The notes under the pieces were generated by a model, which saw nothing but the letters and a program-made list of their open reading frames with translations, made no database searches and had not been told where the DNA came from. The position numbers and the translations under genes were made by a program. Below, one piece after another: positions 12,116 to 49,063 of a stretch of 64,000 nucleotides of DNA. The stretch is from Epiperipatus broadwayi (lineage: Eukaryota > Animalia > Onychophora). The stretch lies in contig JAQFVV010000003.1 in assembly GCA_028023455.1 (NCBI GenBank), forward strand, positions 8,928,001-8,992,000. Direction: 5' to 3'. Positions within the stretch are counted from its first letter, which is position 1. Each line of letters starts with the position of its first letter.

Positions 12116-13081
12116 TATATATACAATTAATCAGTGCAAATAAGGAGAAGAAACGGAAAGACATTTTAATATTTCAGTCAAAAAGGAGTTTGTATATTGT
12201 CTATCACAAAAACTCCCGACTTCTTGGAAAATGAAGCCATTTTACATTATATAAATGTGATATAGAAAACTCATGTGAATTTTTTTTTAGTTTAGTAAAC
12301 ATTTCATAATAAAAACATTTCAATAGCTTTCATTTTTTTTTGTAGTTTGCTCTCTTATTTATTTATATATAAATATTTATTAAAATTAGCAAAAATCTGT
12401 AAAATATTAGTATCAAAAATGATATTAATTGTGCTATTTACAAATAATTTTTTAATCCTCTTTCCTTTCTTGTTATCTCTCTTCTTCCTTTCAGTTTTTT
12501 TTTTTTTTGTCAATTTTATAATTGTAATATGCATTTATTAAATTTATCTTCATTTTAATACTAAATAAATAGCAACATACTTTCTACTGAAATAATAATA
12601 CTGTGTATACTGTTCCATTTGAAAAAAAACAACAACAATTTTTAACGTAAATTTTAATTAGTTACTCCAAAGCCAAAGAATTTGGAATCAAAATTATTAA
12701 ATTTCGGAATCAAATTAGTTCAAAAAACAAACTGAATGTGACACCCTCCTCCCCAATTCTCTTTTAACTGTTTCTTAAACCATGTTGTTAGAATATATAG
12801 ATTGTAGATCATATGCTGTAAATGATTGTTTTAATGAATTATTTTTAATTTTACTTCTTAATACTTAAGAATTGCGTGGATTACTTATAGATGATTAACT
12901 TTTAAAATAAAATGTAATAAAATCTTTAATTTTATGCATTATCGTACATTTTTCAAACAATGTTTAAAATTATGTTTATTTTAATTGAAGACTGAATAAT
13001 TATATTATTATTGTAAATATTTTCATATTTTGATGAATAATAATAATAAATTTTTTTAGAACAAATAAAAAATATCGATTA

Positions 13082-13155: not shown

Positions 13156-14716
13156 ATTTTTATTATTTTGTCAAATTTAGGAATGATTGATTATAATATA
13201 TTAGTTTGTTTTATGGAAAAGTTTAAATTACCAGTAAATATTTATTGTTTATTTTGCTTAGTTGTTAATACATTTTTTTTTAAAAGGTGTGTATTCATAA
13301 AGCTTCTGTCTAAAGGGTATTAAGATGTGTTTAAAAAACGACAGATTATTATTAAAAATAATGGTTTATTTCTGGTGTAGTTAAAACCCAGGATTTTGCC
13401 ATTAGACCTGTTAAACATTTAAATAATAATGAATAAAATAAAATCCCACTGCTATTCATCATAAAAACCTATTTTAAAGCTATATTTAACAAAAACAATA
13501 GTTAAAAAACATTTTTTCATTATTTAAAAAATAATATATATATATGATTATCCCATATACATTCTAAACAAGCACAATACTGATTTCTTTCTTTGGGAAG
13601 ATAAGGCTGACAACAGATTATAATGAAGAACTACAATTACACAAGGTCTTAAAAGTCTTTCAGAAAGAAAACTGCAGAAATAGTTAGAAGACATCAGCAT
13701 AAAATATCAAATAAAATAGAATAATGAACTGGCAAATTCTACATGTGGATGCATTTATAGTTCAGGGCTTTGTATAGTCATCGCAAAAATTAATCTCTAA
13801 TATGTCATTATTATTTTTATTCTTATATCTTATTATTTTCTTTTTGTGGAGTATAAAAAAGATCCCCGATTCATTTTTAATATGATGTTGACTACCATTT
13901 GCATAAATAATTCCATATATGTTAAATATACAATATTTAAACTATATTAAAGAATATTAAACTATTTTTCATGAAGTGTAGTGGTTAGTGCAGTGCCTAT
14001 TATACTACTATCTGGGATTAAATGATCCTTAAAATTTTTTCCAGGAACAAGAAGATTTAAGATTTTCCTTTCAGTTTGTCAAATCATCTATGTTTAATAT
14101 TGGATGGTAAATGGATATATAGAAATAAGTAATTTAATTTGGATTGCCAGAAAGAATTAATATCTGACTGTAAAAACAATATGATTATAATATGATTTAG
14201 CCTTAAATTGGGGAAGAGAAAATTTGAAGTTATATTTCTGCATATGCCAATTTCATAGTCTACTTTTACTATTTATAAAAAAATGTTTTCATTACTCTCT
14301 GTAATGTTACATATTTTTCACAACATCCACAAAAATTTATATTATTTATATCACATATTGGAGAGATTATGATGAAGTATAACATCATTATATTATTAAA
14401 ATTACTGCTTAATCTTAAACTGTATAAGTTGGAACATGTTGGCTGAAAGAAATGTTTTTACTATGGAGTAAATCTGATCTGCCAAAAGATTTAAATAGTC
14501 TACAAATATGGTGCCTTTATAAGAGCTAGAATTGCTCTGATTGTAATCAAAAAATAAAAATATAGCAGAGTTGCTGTTTATGCTATATTTAGTTCCAATT
14601 TTTCATTTTGTGTACATTGTATATATTAGCTTATATTTGTTGATAAGTTTTGAATACAATAGAATGTGTTGCTTACTGAACTGCACTTATTATAAGTATT
14701 TTTCAACATGCTTATA

Positions 14717-17344: not shown

Positions 17345-17907
17345 CAATATATATGTAATACATACAATTCTATTTATATTGTGCATATACAAATTAAGAT
17401 TATACTGTAGTTTTAAAATGAAAAAAAAAATTAAATAATAAATTGAGAAAATATATTTAAATGTATGTGTTTGATTTATTCACATTCACTTAAAAAAAAA
17501 AATTCAATAATAAATGTTTACTGTACAATATCTTTATTTTTAAAATAAAATGAATAGTGAAATGTCATATTTTCATCTCAATTAAAACACCCATGATAAT
17601 ACTCTTTCCTTCAATAATTTTTTTAGCAGTAACATTATTAGCAGAATACAACTTATGTAATTGTTTAGATGATCTTCATATTGATCCTGGCATCTATACA
17701 ACTATTTCTACCTGCCATTACTCATTTCATTTTCTTTTAAATTTTTTGAGCTTTAAGATTTCTGACACAATATAAAAATGATTTACAGATCTTTCTTTTA
17801 TGAATTTTATTAAATTTCATAAAACTTTTAGTTTTATGCTTAGAAAACATTATTTTATTTGCATTATTGTATACATCACATTTGGAAAGGAATCATCATC
17901 ATCATTA

Positions 17908-20736
17908 TCAACCATTATCAATCCACTGCAGGATGAAGGTCTCTCCAAGTTTAATCCATCTTCTCCGATCTTTAGCTTCTCTTCTCCACATCACCCCTAC
18001 ACATTTTCTTATTTCATCCATCCATCTTACATGTGGTCTCCTTCTGGGTCTTTTACAATCTCTTGGAATCCAGTTTAAAATTTCAATTGTCCATCTATTA
18101 TCATCTCTTCTAGCAATATGTCCAGCCCAACTCCACTTCAATCTTTTAATTTTTTCAATGAGGTCAGTAACACCTGTTTGTTCTCTTACCCATACATTGC
18201 GTTTTCGATCTCTTCTTGTTACTCCCAACATACATCTCTCCATACTTCTTTGAGTGGTCTGAAGTCTCTGTATTGATCTTCTATTAAGTGTCCAAGTCTC
18301 AGATCCATAAGTAAGAACTGGTAAAACACATTTGTTAAAAACCTTTCTTTTCAAACACATAGGCATATTTCCTTTTAATATCAAGTTATTTCTACCAAAA
18401 GCACTCCAACCAAGTTTAATTCTATGATTAATTTCCTCTATTATGTTTCCATCTGTATTAATAATCTGACCAAGGTATTTGTAACTCTTAACTTCTTCTA
18501 ATTCATCATAATCAATCTTTATTTTCATATTTTGAGCAAATCGATTAAACATTACTTTAGTCTTTTTAACATTTATCTTTAGTCCTACTTTCCTACTTTC
18601 ATCTGATAACTCCTGCAACATTTCCTGCAGCTCGGAAGCATTATTTGCAAAAACAACTACATCATCTGCGAAATCTAAATGACTTAAATAATCTCCATTT
18701 ACTTTCACTCCTTTAGTTTCCCATTTTAATCCACAAAATACTTCTTGCAGCACTGCTGTAAAAAGTTTTGGAGATATGGAGTCACCTTGTCTTACACCTT
18801 TCTCAATGTTGACTTTCCCAGTATCATTATGTAATCTAATTGTTGCTGTTGCATTTTTATAAATATTCTTTAAAATATGACAATATCCTGGATCTATACC
18901 TTGATGATCCAATGCTTTAATCACTGAAGAAATGTTTATAGAATCAAATGCCTTTTCATAATCTACAAATCCAAAACATAATGACAACTCATATTCATTT
19001 GTCCTTTCTATAACTTCTCTCAATACTTGAATATGATCTACTGTACTAAAACCACTTTTAAATCCAGCTTGTTCTCTTGGTTGGTGAAAATCCAAGGTTC
19101 TCTGTAGACGAGTTGTAATTATCTTGGTAAAAATTTTATATAAAACTGATAAAAGGCTGATAGGTCTGTAATTTCTAATATCTTCTTTATCACCTTTTTT
19201 AAATATTAATATTATTACTGCATTCTTCCAATCATCCAGTACATCTTTATCATTTAGACATTTGGTATATAACTTTGCTAATATTTTTTCTGTTTCTTCA
19301 CCTGCTTCTTTTAATATATCAATTATAATTCCATCATTACCTGGAGCCTTTCCTTTTTTCATACATTTAATTGCATTTCTCACTTCTTCATTTAAAATTC
19401 TGGGCAATTCGGAAGATGTAATAGATATAGGAGGTACTTGTTCTTTATTACTATATAATTCTTGATAAAAATCTTCTACCAATTTCATAATGTCATCCCT
19501 CTTTTTAGTAATAATTCCATCTTTTTTCCTTATTGCAGATATAAATTTTCTACCAATACCAAAATGTTGTTTTACATTCTTAAGACTTTTATTTTCTTCT
19601 ACAGCTTTTCTTGCTAGTTCACAGTTATACTTTCTTATATCATTTTCAACTCTTTTCCGCACCATTTTACAAAATTCGAGATATTCAATTCTTTTTAATG
19701 CATCATTCTTGCATATCTTCATATTCCTTCTTTTCTTCATAAGTTCTCTAGTCTCAGTAGAAATTTTATTAGTCAATTGCTGCTTTTTTCTACCAGCTAT
19801 CTTTGTTGCAGTTTTTAAAAGTGTATCAGTTATTTTCATATTAATTTCATTCAAATCTGAATCATGTTCAAAATCTACTAATACTTGAAACCGATTTGTG
19901 AGTTCTAATTTAAATTCATTAGAATGTTTCTGAAGATTAGGAATATCAACTGTAAATATAGTTTTTCTTAATAATTTTTGTCTCTCTAGTTTTACATTAA
20001 CATGTATCTTACCCCTTACTAATCGATGATCACTTCCTGTGTTAAATTTATTAAGAACATTACAATCTTGAAATATGTATTTCCTGTTAGTCAAAATATA
20101 ATCCAATTCTGCTGTACCTTCATTTCGATGCTTCCATGTCCATTTCCTTCTAACATTTTTCTCAAAAAAAGAATTCATAATATAAAGTTTTTCCTTCTCT
20201 GCAAACTCCACAAGTCTATGTCCTCTCTCATTTCTATTACCATAACCAAAATTACCTACAACACTTTCATCTTTCATTTGTTTACCAATTCTAGCATTAA
20301 AATCTCCCATAACAATTTTAAAATGTTGTTTACTCTGATCAAAAGCCTTTTGTACATCCATATAAAAATCTTCTACTACTTCATCACTGTGAGAACTTGT
20401 TGGGGCATAAACCTGAATTATCTGCATTTGATATCTGCTATTAAGTTGTATAACTAATCTTGCCACTCTGTCTGATACACCATCAATCTCCACAATATTG
20501 TTCTTCCACTTTTTATTTATAATGAATCCTACTCCACTTGTATTTCCAATATTTGTGCCTTTATAATAGAGCATATGTCCACTTTTTAAATCAATTGTCT
20601 CTTCACCTTTTCTTCTAACTTCACAAAGTCCAATAATATCCCATTTAATATAAGAGAGTTCTTCTTCTAATTCTTGCAATCTTCCTTCACTTGAAAATGA
20701 TCTGCAGTTGTAAGTACCTAAATAAAAAGTCGTCAT
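17908..20736 (-). CDS. RTE LINE ORF: apurinic-like endonuclease plus reverse transcriptase (942 aa from the first ATG)
   Basis: APE motifs GTYNCRS, GLCEVR, GDFNAR, LDYIL, SDH; RT motifs NYRPISLL, EQAGF, DYEKAFDS, GVRQGDSISP, FADD, YKYLG; RTE-type C-terminus WAGHIARR...RRRPHVRWMD. No internal stops. Confidence 0.95.
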   Translation of the reverse strand: MTTFYLGTYNCRSFSSEGRLQELEEELSYIKWDIIGLCEVRRKGEETIDLKSGHMLYYKGTNIGNTSGVGFIINKKWKNNIVEIDGVSDRVARLVIQLNSRYQMQIIQVYAPTSSHSDEVVEDFYMDVQKAFDQSKQHFKIVMGDFNARIGKQMKDESVVGNFGYGNRNERGHRLVEFAEKEKLYIMNSFFEKNVRRKWTWKHRNEGTAELDYILTNRKYIFQDCNVLNKFNTGSDHRLVRGKIHVNVKLERQKLLRKTIFTVDIPNLQKHSNEFKLELTNRFQVLVDFEHDSDLNEINMKITDTLLKTATKIAGRKKQQLTNKISTETRELMKKRRNMKICKNDALKRIEYLEFCKMVRKRVENDIRKYNCELARKAVEENKSLKNVKQHFGIGRKFISAIRKKDGIITKKRDDIMKLVEDFYQELYSNKEQVPPISITSSELPRILNEEVRNAIKCMKKGKAPGNDGIIIDILKEAGEETEKILAKLYTKCLNDKDVLDDWKNAVIILIFKKGDKEDIRNYRPISLLSVLYKIFTKIITTRLQRTLDFHQPREQAGFKSGFSTVDHIQVLREVIERTNEYELSLCFGFVDYEKAFDSINISSVIKALDHQGIDPGYCHILKNIYKNATATIRLHNDTGKVNIEKGVRQGDSISPKLFTAVLQEVFCGLKWETKGVKVNGDYLSHLDFADDVVVFANNASELQEMLQELSDESRKVGLKINVKKTKVMFNRFAQNMKIKIDYDELEEVKSYKYLGQIINTDGNIIEEINHRIKLGWSAFGRNNLILKGNMPMCLKRKVFNKCVLPVLTYGSETWTLNRRSIQRLQTTQRSMERCMLGVTRRDRKRNVWVREQTGVTDLIEKIKRLKWSWAGHIARRDDNRWTIEILNWIPRDCKRPRRRPHVRWMDEIRKCVGVMWRREAKDRRRWIKLGETFILQWIDNG

Positions 20737-21021
20737 CAAATGGCAGCCTGGGTCCGCCTCCAGGATATTCTTAGCACCCTCCGCCTTCGGCCACCAACCG
20801 CTGCCTTGGTTGGTGACTTTACAGCCTCCTGGGATTAAGGGCTATGCTTTATTTTTGTCTGTCATAATTGTATAATTGGGAAAAATCTTTACCATTTACA
20901 CAAACATTCATTCTGCCTTATCAGGCACTGAGAAGAAAGACCATGGTGTTTCTTGATCTTAAACTCAGAGGTAAAAAGCCAATAAACTCACCACGCTGGC
21001 TAATGCATGTTGGTGAGCAGC

Positions 21022-21187
21022 CCATCCATGTTCATATACTATATGAATAAACATATAGTAATAACAGCTGCAACGACAAGAACGTATGGAGTGGACATTA
21101 GGAATTTGCCCTGCTCGGTTCCTTTAAGGCCTCCAAGAGGAATCAAAGGGTCTCCTTTCAGTTAATAGCAAACTCCTTTCTGCAGCC
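21022..21187 (-). ncRNA. HDV-like (nested double pseudoknot) ribozyme forming the LINE 5' end; catalytic C appears as T
   Basis: P1 GGCTGCA/TGCAGCT with G1-U wobble; P1.2 GGAGTTTGCT/GGCAAATTCC; P2 CCA(C)TCCAT/ATGGATGG; P3 ACG/CGT; L3 TTCTTGT; P4 TACTATATG/CATATAGTA; J4/2 TGAAC. G1 coincides with the TSD boundary. Confidence 0.8.
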
Positions 21188-21478
21188 TTGGAAAGGAATA
21201 TAAAGCAAAAAATAAACTATGTGTTTTCAATATAAGCCAAAGAAATTAATAAATGTAATCATATATAGTTCCCCAAGGAGAAAATGATTGCTTCCATATT
21301 ATAAAATTTATTAAATTTATGAATTTTAATGTTTTTATTTATTTACACTTTTTTTGGATAGTAAATAATAGAATTGTATACTGATAACAGCATATATCAA
21401 AACTTCACCATATGATTGCACAATTTCATAATTTGGTTAACACAGTGTAGAGATGAACAGTAAGAGCTCACACGACAA

Positions 21479-22180: not shown

Positions 22181-23730
22181 ATCATCATCATCACCATCAT
22201 TATTCAACCATTATTGATTAAATGCAGGGTTAAGTGCTTTTCAAGTTTAATTCAGTTTCTCTGATTTTTAGCCATTCTTCTACACATCACACCAACAAAC
22301 CTTACTTTATCCATCCATCTCTCATGTAATCTGTTTTTTGATTTTTTTATAATTCCTTGCGATTCAATTTAAAACATCAGTTATCTATCTGTGATCACCT
22401 GTTCTAAAAATATGTCTAACCTAGCTTCATTTCAGTCTCTTAATATTTTCAATGATGTCTGTGATATCTATTGATTTTCTCATCTATGTCTTTAATTTTC
22501 TGACTTTTTGTTACTCCTAACACATACCTTTTTATATTTCATTGAATTGTTTGAAGTTTCTATATTGTGTTCTTTTATTAAGTATCCACAGCTCAGATCC
22601 AACTAAGAAAAGACATATATTAAAAACCTTTCTTTACAAACATGTAGGCATAATTCTTATTGATACTATATTATTTATATCAAATGCACTTCATACAATT
22701 TTAATTCTATGATTAATTTTATCTATTATATTTCCAGTTGTAATATAATATGAACAAAGTATTTATAATTGTTAACTTTAATTTATGATTATGAAACTTT
22801 GTTTTTTTTTTTCTTTTGAGAAAATTCATTCAACATTATTTTAGACTTTGTTAATATTATCTACAGTCCTATTTTCTTACATTCATTTGATAAATCTGCA
22901 ACATTTTCTAAAACTCTAAAGCATTATTTGCAAAACAACCACATTATTTATCATGAAAATCTCCCATGATAATTTTTGTATGATCAAAAGCGTTTTGTAT
23001 ATCCATATAGAAATCCTCTATGCCTTTGGTATAATGAGATCTTATTATGGCCTGAATTATATACATTTGATATTTTTTTATTAATTAATCTTGCTACTGT
23101 CTGATATAATACCAATCTCCACAATGTTGTTGTTTTTTTTTTTCACTTTTTATTTATAATGAAACTCACTTCACTTGTGTAGTCAATATTTGTATCTTTG
23201 TAGTAAAATATATATCCACTTTTATTTCTTTACCTTTTCTTCTAACATTATAAAGTTTAACAATATTCTATTTATGTTAGATAGTTTTTTCTTACTAAGT
23301 TCCTGCAATCTTTTTTTATTTGAAAGGGATCTCTCATTGTAGGTAGCTAAGTAAAAGTTCCATATTGAATGGCATTATGGAGCTGCAATCACAAGATTGA
23401 TTGTTGCTTTGATGGATGAATTCACAGCTTCCTGGGAATAAGTGTCATGATTTAGTTTTTATCTGTCATGTTTGCAAATATCTGTAAAAAACCATAAACA
23501 AACATTCATCTTGTCTTCAAAAAAAATTTAACTAACATTTCAATTAAAATCTATCAGGCAACTAAGAAGAAAAACTATGATGTTTTTTAATTTTAAACTT
23601 AAAAGATAAAAAGCTATTGAACTCATCATTCTGTTGTATGTTGGTGAGTGATCTATCCATATTCATTTATCATAAACTTAATCACTTAGTAATAACAACT
23701 ACAATGACAAGAATGTGTGGAGTGGACAAA
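22181..23730 (-). mobile_element. Decayed, internally deleted copy of the RTE LINE
   Basis: The (ATC)n tail and 3' ORF align with 17894-18660; after a jump at about 22970 it aligns with the endonuclease region (20340-20730) and with the 5' UTR/ribozyme region (gaatgtgtggagtggac vs gaacgtatggagtggac). Confidence 0.85.
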
Positions 23731-47149: not shown

Positions 47150-48179
47150 ATCATTATTTGGATGCTTAATTAATTATTCATTTCATCTTTGGACTTTTTA
47201 AAAAATGAATTCATAATATAAAGTTTCCTTCATCTGCAAATTCATTTTTTCTTCATAACCAAAGTTGTTCCACATTATTTTCTTTTTTAAATTGGTTTCT
47301 ATTCCTAATATTAAAATGTTTTTTATAAACAATTTGAAAATGTTTGATAGTGCTGATCAAAAGTATTTTGTAAATCTGTAGAAAAACCCTCTGTTTCTTC
47401 ATCACAATGACTACTTATTGGGGTATAAAATCCAAGCAATTTTTTTACTTGGTCTGATATATTCCATTTTTCACAATATTGATTTTTTTCCTTCATATTT
47501 TTAATACATGATAAATACCACATGATTTGCACTTCCAACATTTTTGCCTTTATAATAAAATACATGCCATTTTTTCTTCTAATTTAACAAAGTTCAACAG
47601 TCTCATTTAATATTAGATAGATATTTTTTTGTAATTCATGCAATCTTTATTTATTTGAAAAAGATTTATAGTTATAAGTAGCTAAATAAAAGATCATCAT
47701 AATGGCAATCTCTTCTGTAACTAAGGAATTCTTAGCATCATCTGACTCTAGTAATGCCCTGGCTAATAACTTTATATTCCCTAAGAAATAAGGACCATAA
47801 TTTATTATTGTATTTGATAAATGTATTGTAAATATAAAATAGAACCATTATTCAAATAAACATATACCCATATTCATTCTACTTTCAAAAAAATATCAAG
47901 CAATGTTTTAGTTGTAAATTATCAAACATGTTAGAAGTAAAACTATTGTATTTTTTGGTATTAGACTTGGAGATAAAAACTAATAAACTCACTATGTGGC
48001 TATTGTGTGATGGTGCTCAGCATATCAGTATTTATTTATTATGTGAATCATATGTTAATAACAGCTGCAATGATAGTAATATGTAGTGACATTAGAAATT
48101 TATCTTGCTTAATTTTTTAAGCCACTGAAGAGTAATCAACAAATCTTTTTTCAGTTGATAGTAAACTCATTTGTATGCC
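47150..48179 (-). mobile_element. Decayed RTE copy retaining the 5' UTR and endonuclease region
   Basis: aaaaaatgaattcataatataaagtttccttcatctgcaaa matches 20165-20205; aataacagctgcaatga matches 21060-21076; ends at gtaaactcatttgtatgcc, the same 5' end as the intact copy. Confidence 0.8.
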
Positions 48180-49063
48180 ATCCTTTTAAATAGCGGTCTT
48201 TATATGCATATTTTTTTAAATTTAAGATTTCACTTCTTTAAAAACATTTCTCATTCATCTAGATAGTTTTAAAATATATTTAGTTGTTGATTTATATATA
48301 TGAATTTTTATTCTTATCATACAAATATTTTTTGATAAATTTTCTTTACCGATTACATTATATATGTGGCACTCATGTTTAGAAACATTCATTGACTATT
48401 TTTAAATATAAGCACTGCATACTTTTATTTCGGATATATCATATTAAGAATTATTTTGTAGTATTACATAAAATATGTCATCTCAGTTTGTTGCAAGAAA
48501 AATTTAAATATAATGAAATCATGATACCTACTGGCAAAAAAAAAAAAAAGTAAATAAATAAAAACATTAAAATTTTTATGAGAATATATCACAACTGGTA
48601 CATTAGTAGCCCATTTTTCATCTTGCAACTTGCTAATTCTAATATGATTTCATTTATTAACTACATTTTTTTCATGTTAAATATATTGAGAGTACCGACT
48701 TAATTTTTTTTTTTAAATTGATGTAATGTAGTATTTCATTTTATAAAATGTTTTCTAAGCATAATCAAAGATAATTCATACTCTTAATAAGTGATAAAAG
48801 TGAAAACTATAAAAAAATATTTCTAAAAAATGAACCTTATATTAAAAAAGGATGAATCATTCATTAAACAAATAATGAAAAGGCAAGAGCATATTCATGC
48901 CATTGTTGTTTACACTCCTGAAATGGCAAAAGCTATAACCCACTTTAAAGCATATTTTTAAGCATTGAATTTATAGATAGAAGAATAAATGGATAGAATG
49001 TTTCTGTTAGACATTATTATATTGCATCAGAAAGCTTAAATTCTATTTAAAAAATCTGATATT

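Follow-up and report, generated by a model that had tools for sequence, protein, structure and literature searches.

A probable HDV-like ribozyme at the exact 5' end of an abundant RTE-clade LINE in Epiperipatus broadwayi, with the catalytic C replaced by U in one young copy

HDV-like ribozymes of RTE elements that carry a P1.2 domain are a class already described, known since 2009-2011; Webb et al. in 2009 and Ruminski et al. in 2011 reportedly described those of the drz-Agam-2 type in Anopheles RTE elements. In the genomic HDV ribozyme, the C-G-A-A of J4/2 corresponds to C75-A78 and the L3 residues are U20 and G25. Replacement of HDV C75 with U abolishes cleavage. At the 5' ends of RTE elements, cleavage by HDV-like ribozymes falls on the junction (PMC3774820, PMC6765202). 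The P1.2 domain, P1.2 activation and kinetics of drz-Agam-2-1 have been documented (PMC4908430). R2 elements also use HDV-like ribozymes, in whose assays the catalytic C is replaced with U as a test mutation (PMC3774820). In Schistosoma mansoni, the RTE Perere-3 carries a twister-variant ribozyme at its 5' end, and its copies with inactive ribozymes have been discussed as dead ends (PMC8501958). With regard to the ribozyme, the locus described here breaks little new ground: it extends the known cases by a single RTE family of at least 13,000 copies that probably has a large HDV-like ribozyme at its exact 5' end.

The window is the whole 64,000-nt stretch of DNA that was analyzed (contig JAQFVV010000003.1 of E. 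broadwayi, assembly GCA_028023455.1, positions 8,928,001 to 8,992,000). Like the 5.6-Gb host genome, it is AT-rich, with a GC content of 25% in both. An RTE-clade LINE copy spans 21187-17892 on the minus strand, with G1 at 21187 as its first base, and the coordinates of the ribozyme make sense solely on this strand, reading from 21187 to 21022. The sole long ORF of the window (17908-20739, minus strand) encodes an APE endonuclease plus reverse transcriptase and has Pfam matches to Exo_endo_phos and RVT_1. Homologues of the ORF, several of them annotated as endonuclease-reverse transcriptase, are 35-61% identical and come from psyllids, moths and others; the nearest protein relatives (P0001-P0003) share 58-61% identity with it. 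Three contigs labeled "human gut metagenome" also bear relatives of the ORF. The single ORF with APE and RT domains, the very short 3' UTR with simple repeats and the TSDs are those of the RTE clade. The genome contains many full-length copies at least 99% identical to the window copy. A 24-nt pattern around J4/2 is matched exactly at 13,473 sites, which gives the lower bound on family size. The element itself is young and full-length, and its RTE-clade LINE family is very abundant.

The initial annotation had placed G1 precisely at the edge of a TSD, and the 10-bp TSD TCCTTTCCAA does directly adjoin 21187. Many other insertions of the family are found in TA dinucleotide repeats, as seen in the 5' flanks of L011, L018, L125, L142, L144, L149, L160, L166 and others, which suggests a target preference of the RTE endonuclease.

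The ORF had also been called intact, a claim that stands for the 942-aa APE and RT frame but not for the ancestral reading frame as a whole. The frame from the AUG at 20736 stays open and covers both domains, but the ancestral start at 20865, 129 nt further upstream, is followed by TAG at codon 8. In ten intact relatives the long ORF begins at an AUG ~45 codons upstream of the APE domain, and this start encodes a conserved N-terminal extension of ~44 aa that closes in an EGAKN motif. Codon 8 is TGG in 38 copies of the family and TAG in 16 (~30% TAG), and the window copy shares the TAG with its close relatives L002, L005 and L006. The TAG is found on two subfamily backgrounds.

All elements of the HDV-like fold that had been proposed for the first 166 nt fit the sequence from 21187 to 21022 (Table 1). 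The canonical nested double pseudoknot is present, with P1 (7 bp), P1.1, P2, P3 (3 bp) and P4 in this order. The U and G of L3 are spaced as U20 and G25 of HDV, and the L3 C is available for P1.1. This helix comprises only one Watson-Crick pair (G-C) plus a U.U, which counts against the assignment. A subfamily variant in P4, A or G at 21054, maintains pairing as A-U or G.U. A pseudoknot-free MFE fold of the entire stretch regained P1.2, P2 and P4, and J1/2 folded alone forms the long P1.2 rod, with an MFE of -29.5 kcal/mol and a z-score of -3.2. The C-N-A-A that marks the catalytic C in J4/2 of HDV-like ribozymes is present in the family and absent from the window copy. By analogy with the described ribozymes, the first ~166 nt of the family probably encode a large-type HDV-like, double-pseudoknotted, self-cleaving ribozyme with a structured P1.2 and an extended P2.

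Table 1. Features of the RTE copy, with the corresponding elements of related leaders. Positions are those of the window unless a locus is named.
Feature	Position	Strand	Basis or remark
5' TSD TCCTTTCCAA	21188..21197	-	adjoins G1 without a gap; identical 10 bases past the 3' (GAT)n tail
P1 5' strand GGCUGCA	21181..21187	-	G1 (21187) is element base 1 and the nucleotide at the predicted cleavage site
J1/2, 86 nt, bearing the long P1.2 rod (peripheral domain)	21095..21180	-	MFE, z-score
P2 5' strand CCA[C]UCCAU, single bulged C	21086..21094	-	descriptor and MFE
P3 ACG/CGU around L3 UUCUUGU	21073..21085	-	L3 is 21082-21076; descriptor, direct reading
P1 3' strand UGCAGCU	21066..21072	-	7-bp P1, G1.U wobble
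J1/4 GU	21064..21065	-	G pairs with L3 C (one-pair P1.1); U opposite U
P4 hairpin, 9 bp	21037..21063	-	21060-52 with 21045-37
J4/2 UA-U-GAA-C	21030..21036	-	catalytic position 21034 is U; family majority C-G-A-A
P2 3' strand AUGGAUGG	21022..21029	-	8 bp and one bulge with the P2 5' strand
Conserved H-type pseudoknot	20977..21017	-	S1 21017-21011 with 20993-20987; S2 21001-20997 with 20981-20977
Ancestral start ATG at 20865 and in-frame TAG at codon 8 (20844-20842)	20842..20865	-	comparison with copies and relatives
APE endonuclease and reverse transcriptase frame, 942 aa	17908..20736	-	stop within the coordinates; Pfam
3' tail, GAT/TGA repeats, terminating the element	17892..17907	-	read next to the TSD
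3' TSD TCCTTTCCAA	17882..17891	-	perfect 10-bp match to the 5' TSD
Pseudoknot elsewhere	L041:620-678, L033:243-302, L044:163-216, L211:245-290, others		metagenomic RTE leaders
tRNA-like heads	L037:24-100, L031:70-150, L033:80-160, L032:15-130, L035:~1220-1300, L211:55-130		box A/B

The family resembles drz-Agam-2 of Anopheles RTE in its double pseudoknot at the exact 5' end, its large J1/2 (P1.2) and extended P2, and in a predicted cleavage 5' of G1 that sets the first base of the element. Unlike drz-Agam-2, to which sequence homology is undetectable, its P1.1 is cut to one pair, as in CPEB3, its host is a strongly CpG-depleted 5.6-Gb genome, and its activity is a prediction. With the genomic HDV ribozyme the family shares C-G-A-A in J4/2, the G1.U wobble, a 7-bp P1, a 3-bp P3 and a 7-nt L3 with the same U/G spacing, but it differs by the 86-nt insert in J1/2, the single pair of P1.1 and an additional C ahead of P2. 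This likeness implies no relation to the virus. Like the R2 ribozymes, the ribozyme would process the 5' end of a co-transcript and has its catalytic C in J4/2, whereas R2 inserts specifically into 28S rDNA and its cleavage site is often upstream, within the rRNA (PMC3774820); insertion of the RTE is dispersed, often in TA repeats, and cleavage is predicted at the junction. In Perere-3, as here, the TSD lies directly beside the ribozyme cleavage site (PMC8501958). That ribozyme belongs to another class, and the TSD is part of its P1, whereas the ribozyme of the window lies wholly inside the element.

The 5' ends of the copies are consistent with cleavage at G1. In an unbiased sample of 60 copies, taken in genome order without similarity as a criterion, 36 start exactly at G1 with unrelated upstream DNA. 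The others are 5'-truncated or, in a few cases, show a point change within the initial bases, and none of the 60 reaches further 5'. At least 22 of 30 similar copies likewise start at G1 with unrelated upstream DNA. G1 is the 5' end of the family, and the decayed copy near 48174-48180 of the window, for which the same end point had been reported at 48179, ends at about G1. We propose that the element would be transcribed within a longer host transcript, that the ribozyme would cleave immediately 5' of G1, and that the trimmed RNA, with a 5'-OH and the folded ribozyme at its end, would be translated and then reverse-transcribed. Full-length copies would then begin exactly at G1, beside the TSD, because the ribozyme would cut just 5' of this base. 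By analogy with the characterized RTE ribozymes, we infer co-transcription and self-cleavage of the parent RNA, and a loss of activity in the window copy.

The catalytic position was scored across the family using per-column counts over the first 240 nt of the copies. C is the majority base and C-bearing copies are abundant: C is present in 26 of 30 similar copies and in 44 of the 60 unbiased copies, and a manual count of the first 100 of the 13,473 J4/2 matches gave 60 CG, 17 TG, 17 CA and 6 TA. The ten nearest full-length relatives (at least 99% identical, compared over the first 210 nt) all have C at the equivalent of 21034; the U at this position is therefore a private CpG-to-TpG transition, in agreement with the CpG deamination that had been postulated from the window alone. 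The change probably arose at or after insertion and is of the methyl-CpG type. Both decayed copies in the window also have T at the catalytic site (TGAA at 23665 and TAAA at 48034), as previously read. By analogy with HDV C75U and with the C-to-U controls in HDV-like ribozymes, U at 21034 should abolish cleavage. By sequence, the window copy is a natural equivalent of the HDV C75U mutant and documents such an allele. One relative, L202, matches the window copy throughout the first 200 nt save for the catalytic base, which is C in L202, and the two form a natural near-isogenic C/U pair.

It is conceivable that the fold is real and serves mainly as a stable 5' structure, for exonuclease protection, translation or RNP assembly, in which case loss of the catalytic C would be minor for the window copy. 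Ribozyme folds have been reported to be cap-like and protective and to support downstream translation (PMC13708176, PMC8501958), and a conserved pseudoknot lies directly 3' of the ribozyme. Nevertheless, the hypermutable catalytic CpG is kept by the majority of the family, including all ten of the nearest young relatives, and the exact starts of copies at G1 would be unexplained without cleavage. A mainly structural role is therefore improbable, although it fares slightly better than the other alternatives. An HDV-like ribozyme that heads a young RTE, is dead in the window copy by CpG decay and is otherwise ordinary for its kind is, with good confidence, the preferred explanation.

The initial annotation had proposed a search with an HDV-like descriptor or a covariance model, and a descriptor recovers the fold. 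The strict descriptor comprised P1 with G1.U, P3, the L3 C, the J1/4 G, P4 closure, C/U-N-R-A in J4/2, and P2. It matches with G1 at 21187 and the C-site at 21034, only when U is permitted at the catalytic position, and it is still satisfied by 29 of 89 genomic copies. With C or U permitted, the same descriptor matches random sequence composed like the window 21 times per 1.28 Mb, or ~2 per window, so that a match by itself says little. Two other strict matches occur in the window, at 12147-12413 on the plus strand and at 45306-45027 on the minus strand, the number expected by chance. The first base of the element is defined independently, and the probability that a match would place G1 on it by chance is ~1.6e-5. 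Rfam searches of the whole window at the gathering score and of 20900-21300 at E <= 10 returned no match to a ribozyme family (HDV, CPEB3, drz), likely because of the 86-nt insert in J1/2. The 20 metagenomic RTE loci searched with Rfam at the gathering score likewise gave no ribozyme family match.

Among 38 distinct copies of the family, 96.5% of cells pair, and covariation is not above that of shuffles; the variation within the family in the ribozyme is neutral decay. A C-G to U-A change of the middle pair of P3 was considered as a compensatory change and dropped, since the non-compensating CA-CA combination associates even more strongly, and both combinations therefore reflect copy age. Beyond the family, strict and relaxed descriptors detected no HDV-like fold above the reverse-complement background in 80 loci from metagenomes or in a contaminant contig of one MAG, all with RTE relatives; the proteins of the metagenomic loci scanned are 31-55% identical to the window ORF. 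The fold is therefore without phylogenetic support beyond its own family. A search for a second RTE family in the same genome by means of the conserved downstream motif returned just point-mutated copies of the same family, and the viral contigs searched contained no RTE relatives.

An internal promoter or a transcription start at G1 could also set the 5' end, with the HDV-like fold being due to chance or non-catalytic. Sharp 5' ends occur in LINEs with internal promoters too. The lack of covariation above shuffles, of an Rfam match and of an HDV-like fold in related RTE lineages are all compatible with a promoter. However, the full descriptor, including G1.U, the 7-bp P1, C-G-A-A and the L3 residues, begins at base 1 of the element, a coincidence with the low probability given above, and this architecture has been demonstrated experimentally in RTEs (PMC3774820, PMC6765202). 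A promoter at G1 is for these reasons quite unlikely, marginally more so than a structural role, and self-cleavage is the preferred account of the 5' ends.

The loss of the catalytic CpG follows the general decay of CpG in this genome. The window has a CpG o/e of 0.22, with TpG and CpA in excess, and divergence within the family is 22-25% at CpG sites, 5.7% at other C/G and 1.9% at A/T. That the T at 21034 stems from an error in assembly or sequencing, or represents only one allele at a heterozygous position, is the least probable alternative: the T is a single-base difference from all ten nearest relatives, and near-identical repeats abound in the 5.6-Gb assembly, but the same CpG-to-TpG change occurs in ~17% of independent copies and fits the genome-wide decay, so that a real mutation is the simpler reading.

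The initial annotation had further suggested that host methylation could inactivate the family specifically at its ribozyme, and this idea holds only in a trivial sense. The catalytic CpG is retained in 62% of copies, compared to 46-65% for the five further CpGs located within the first 240 nt. CpG loss climbs with copy age, and the TG and CA products are equally frequent. Decay of the catalytic CpG at the pace of its neighbors, with TG equal to CA, indicates passive decay after insertion. About 40% of copies have lost the catalytic CpG, which is the normal fate in the family; death of the ribozyme is common and not targeted. The element has 22 CpGs (o/e 0.28), of which 6 fall within the first 200 nt, including 3 inside the ribozyme core. 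Such enrichment at the 5' end of an element otherwise purged of CpG is consistent with constraint on the active lineage.

The H-type pseudoknot directly 3' of the ribozyme has stems S1 (CUCACCA/UGGUGAG) and S2 (AGCCA/UGGCU), and its sequence can be recognized in the MAG contig as well as in 20 or more metagenomic RTE leaders. Compensatory substitutions are found in both stems, with five pairs changed on both sides. None of 500 shuffles reached the observed covariation score, and slid controls scored far lower. The pseudoknot covaries among lineages whose proteins are just ~45-50% identical. It has no match in Rfam, in the window or in the 20 metagenomic loci, and no description of it was found in the literature searched. 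In ten intact lineages the start codon lies 47-59 nt from the start of the motif, a few bases beyond the second stem. The pseudoknot may help the processed RNA, which would lack a cap, to be translated; it may act in cap-independent translation or in protein loading on such RNA. It could matter more than the ribozyme, since it could bear on the translation of uncapped, ribozyme-processed LINE RNAs. It could likewise be relevant to templates for RTE-based gene writing, in which the cognate 5' UTR is retained (PMC13708176).

Several RTE lineages have, in place of the ribozyme, a tRNA-like head upstream of the pseudoknot, with a box A similar to TGGCTCAGTGG and a box B similar to GGTTCGA. ARAGORN and Rfam called no tRNA in these heads. 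Their position suggests an alternative means of defining the 5' end. Tentatively, and with somewhat less than even confidence, RTE leaders may be modular, consisting of an exchangeable head that defines the 5' end (HDV-like, tRNA-like or the twister of Perere-3) and an H-type pseudoknot that is widely shared and lies a few bases ahead of the start codon.

Two minor features of the leader were also observed. Directly after P2, at 21022-21017 on the minus strand (element nt 166-171), GGCUGC repeats the P1 5' strand; this repeat could form 6 bp with the P1 3' strand, ruling out P1, and it is almost invariant across the family. Further downstream, a 67-nt stretch (element nt 232-298, window 20956-20890, minus strand) is missing in ~1/6 of copies. 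Copies that align to nt 1-231 alone were considered as non-autonomous derivatives, and instead represent a subfamily without leader nt 232-298. The start codon of the window family lies 85 or 152 nt from the start of the pseudoknot motif, depending on the subfamily.
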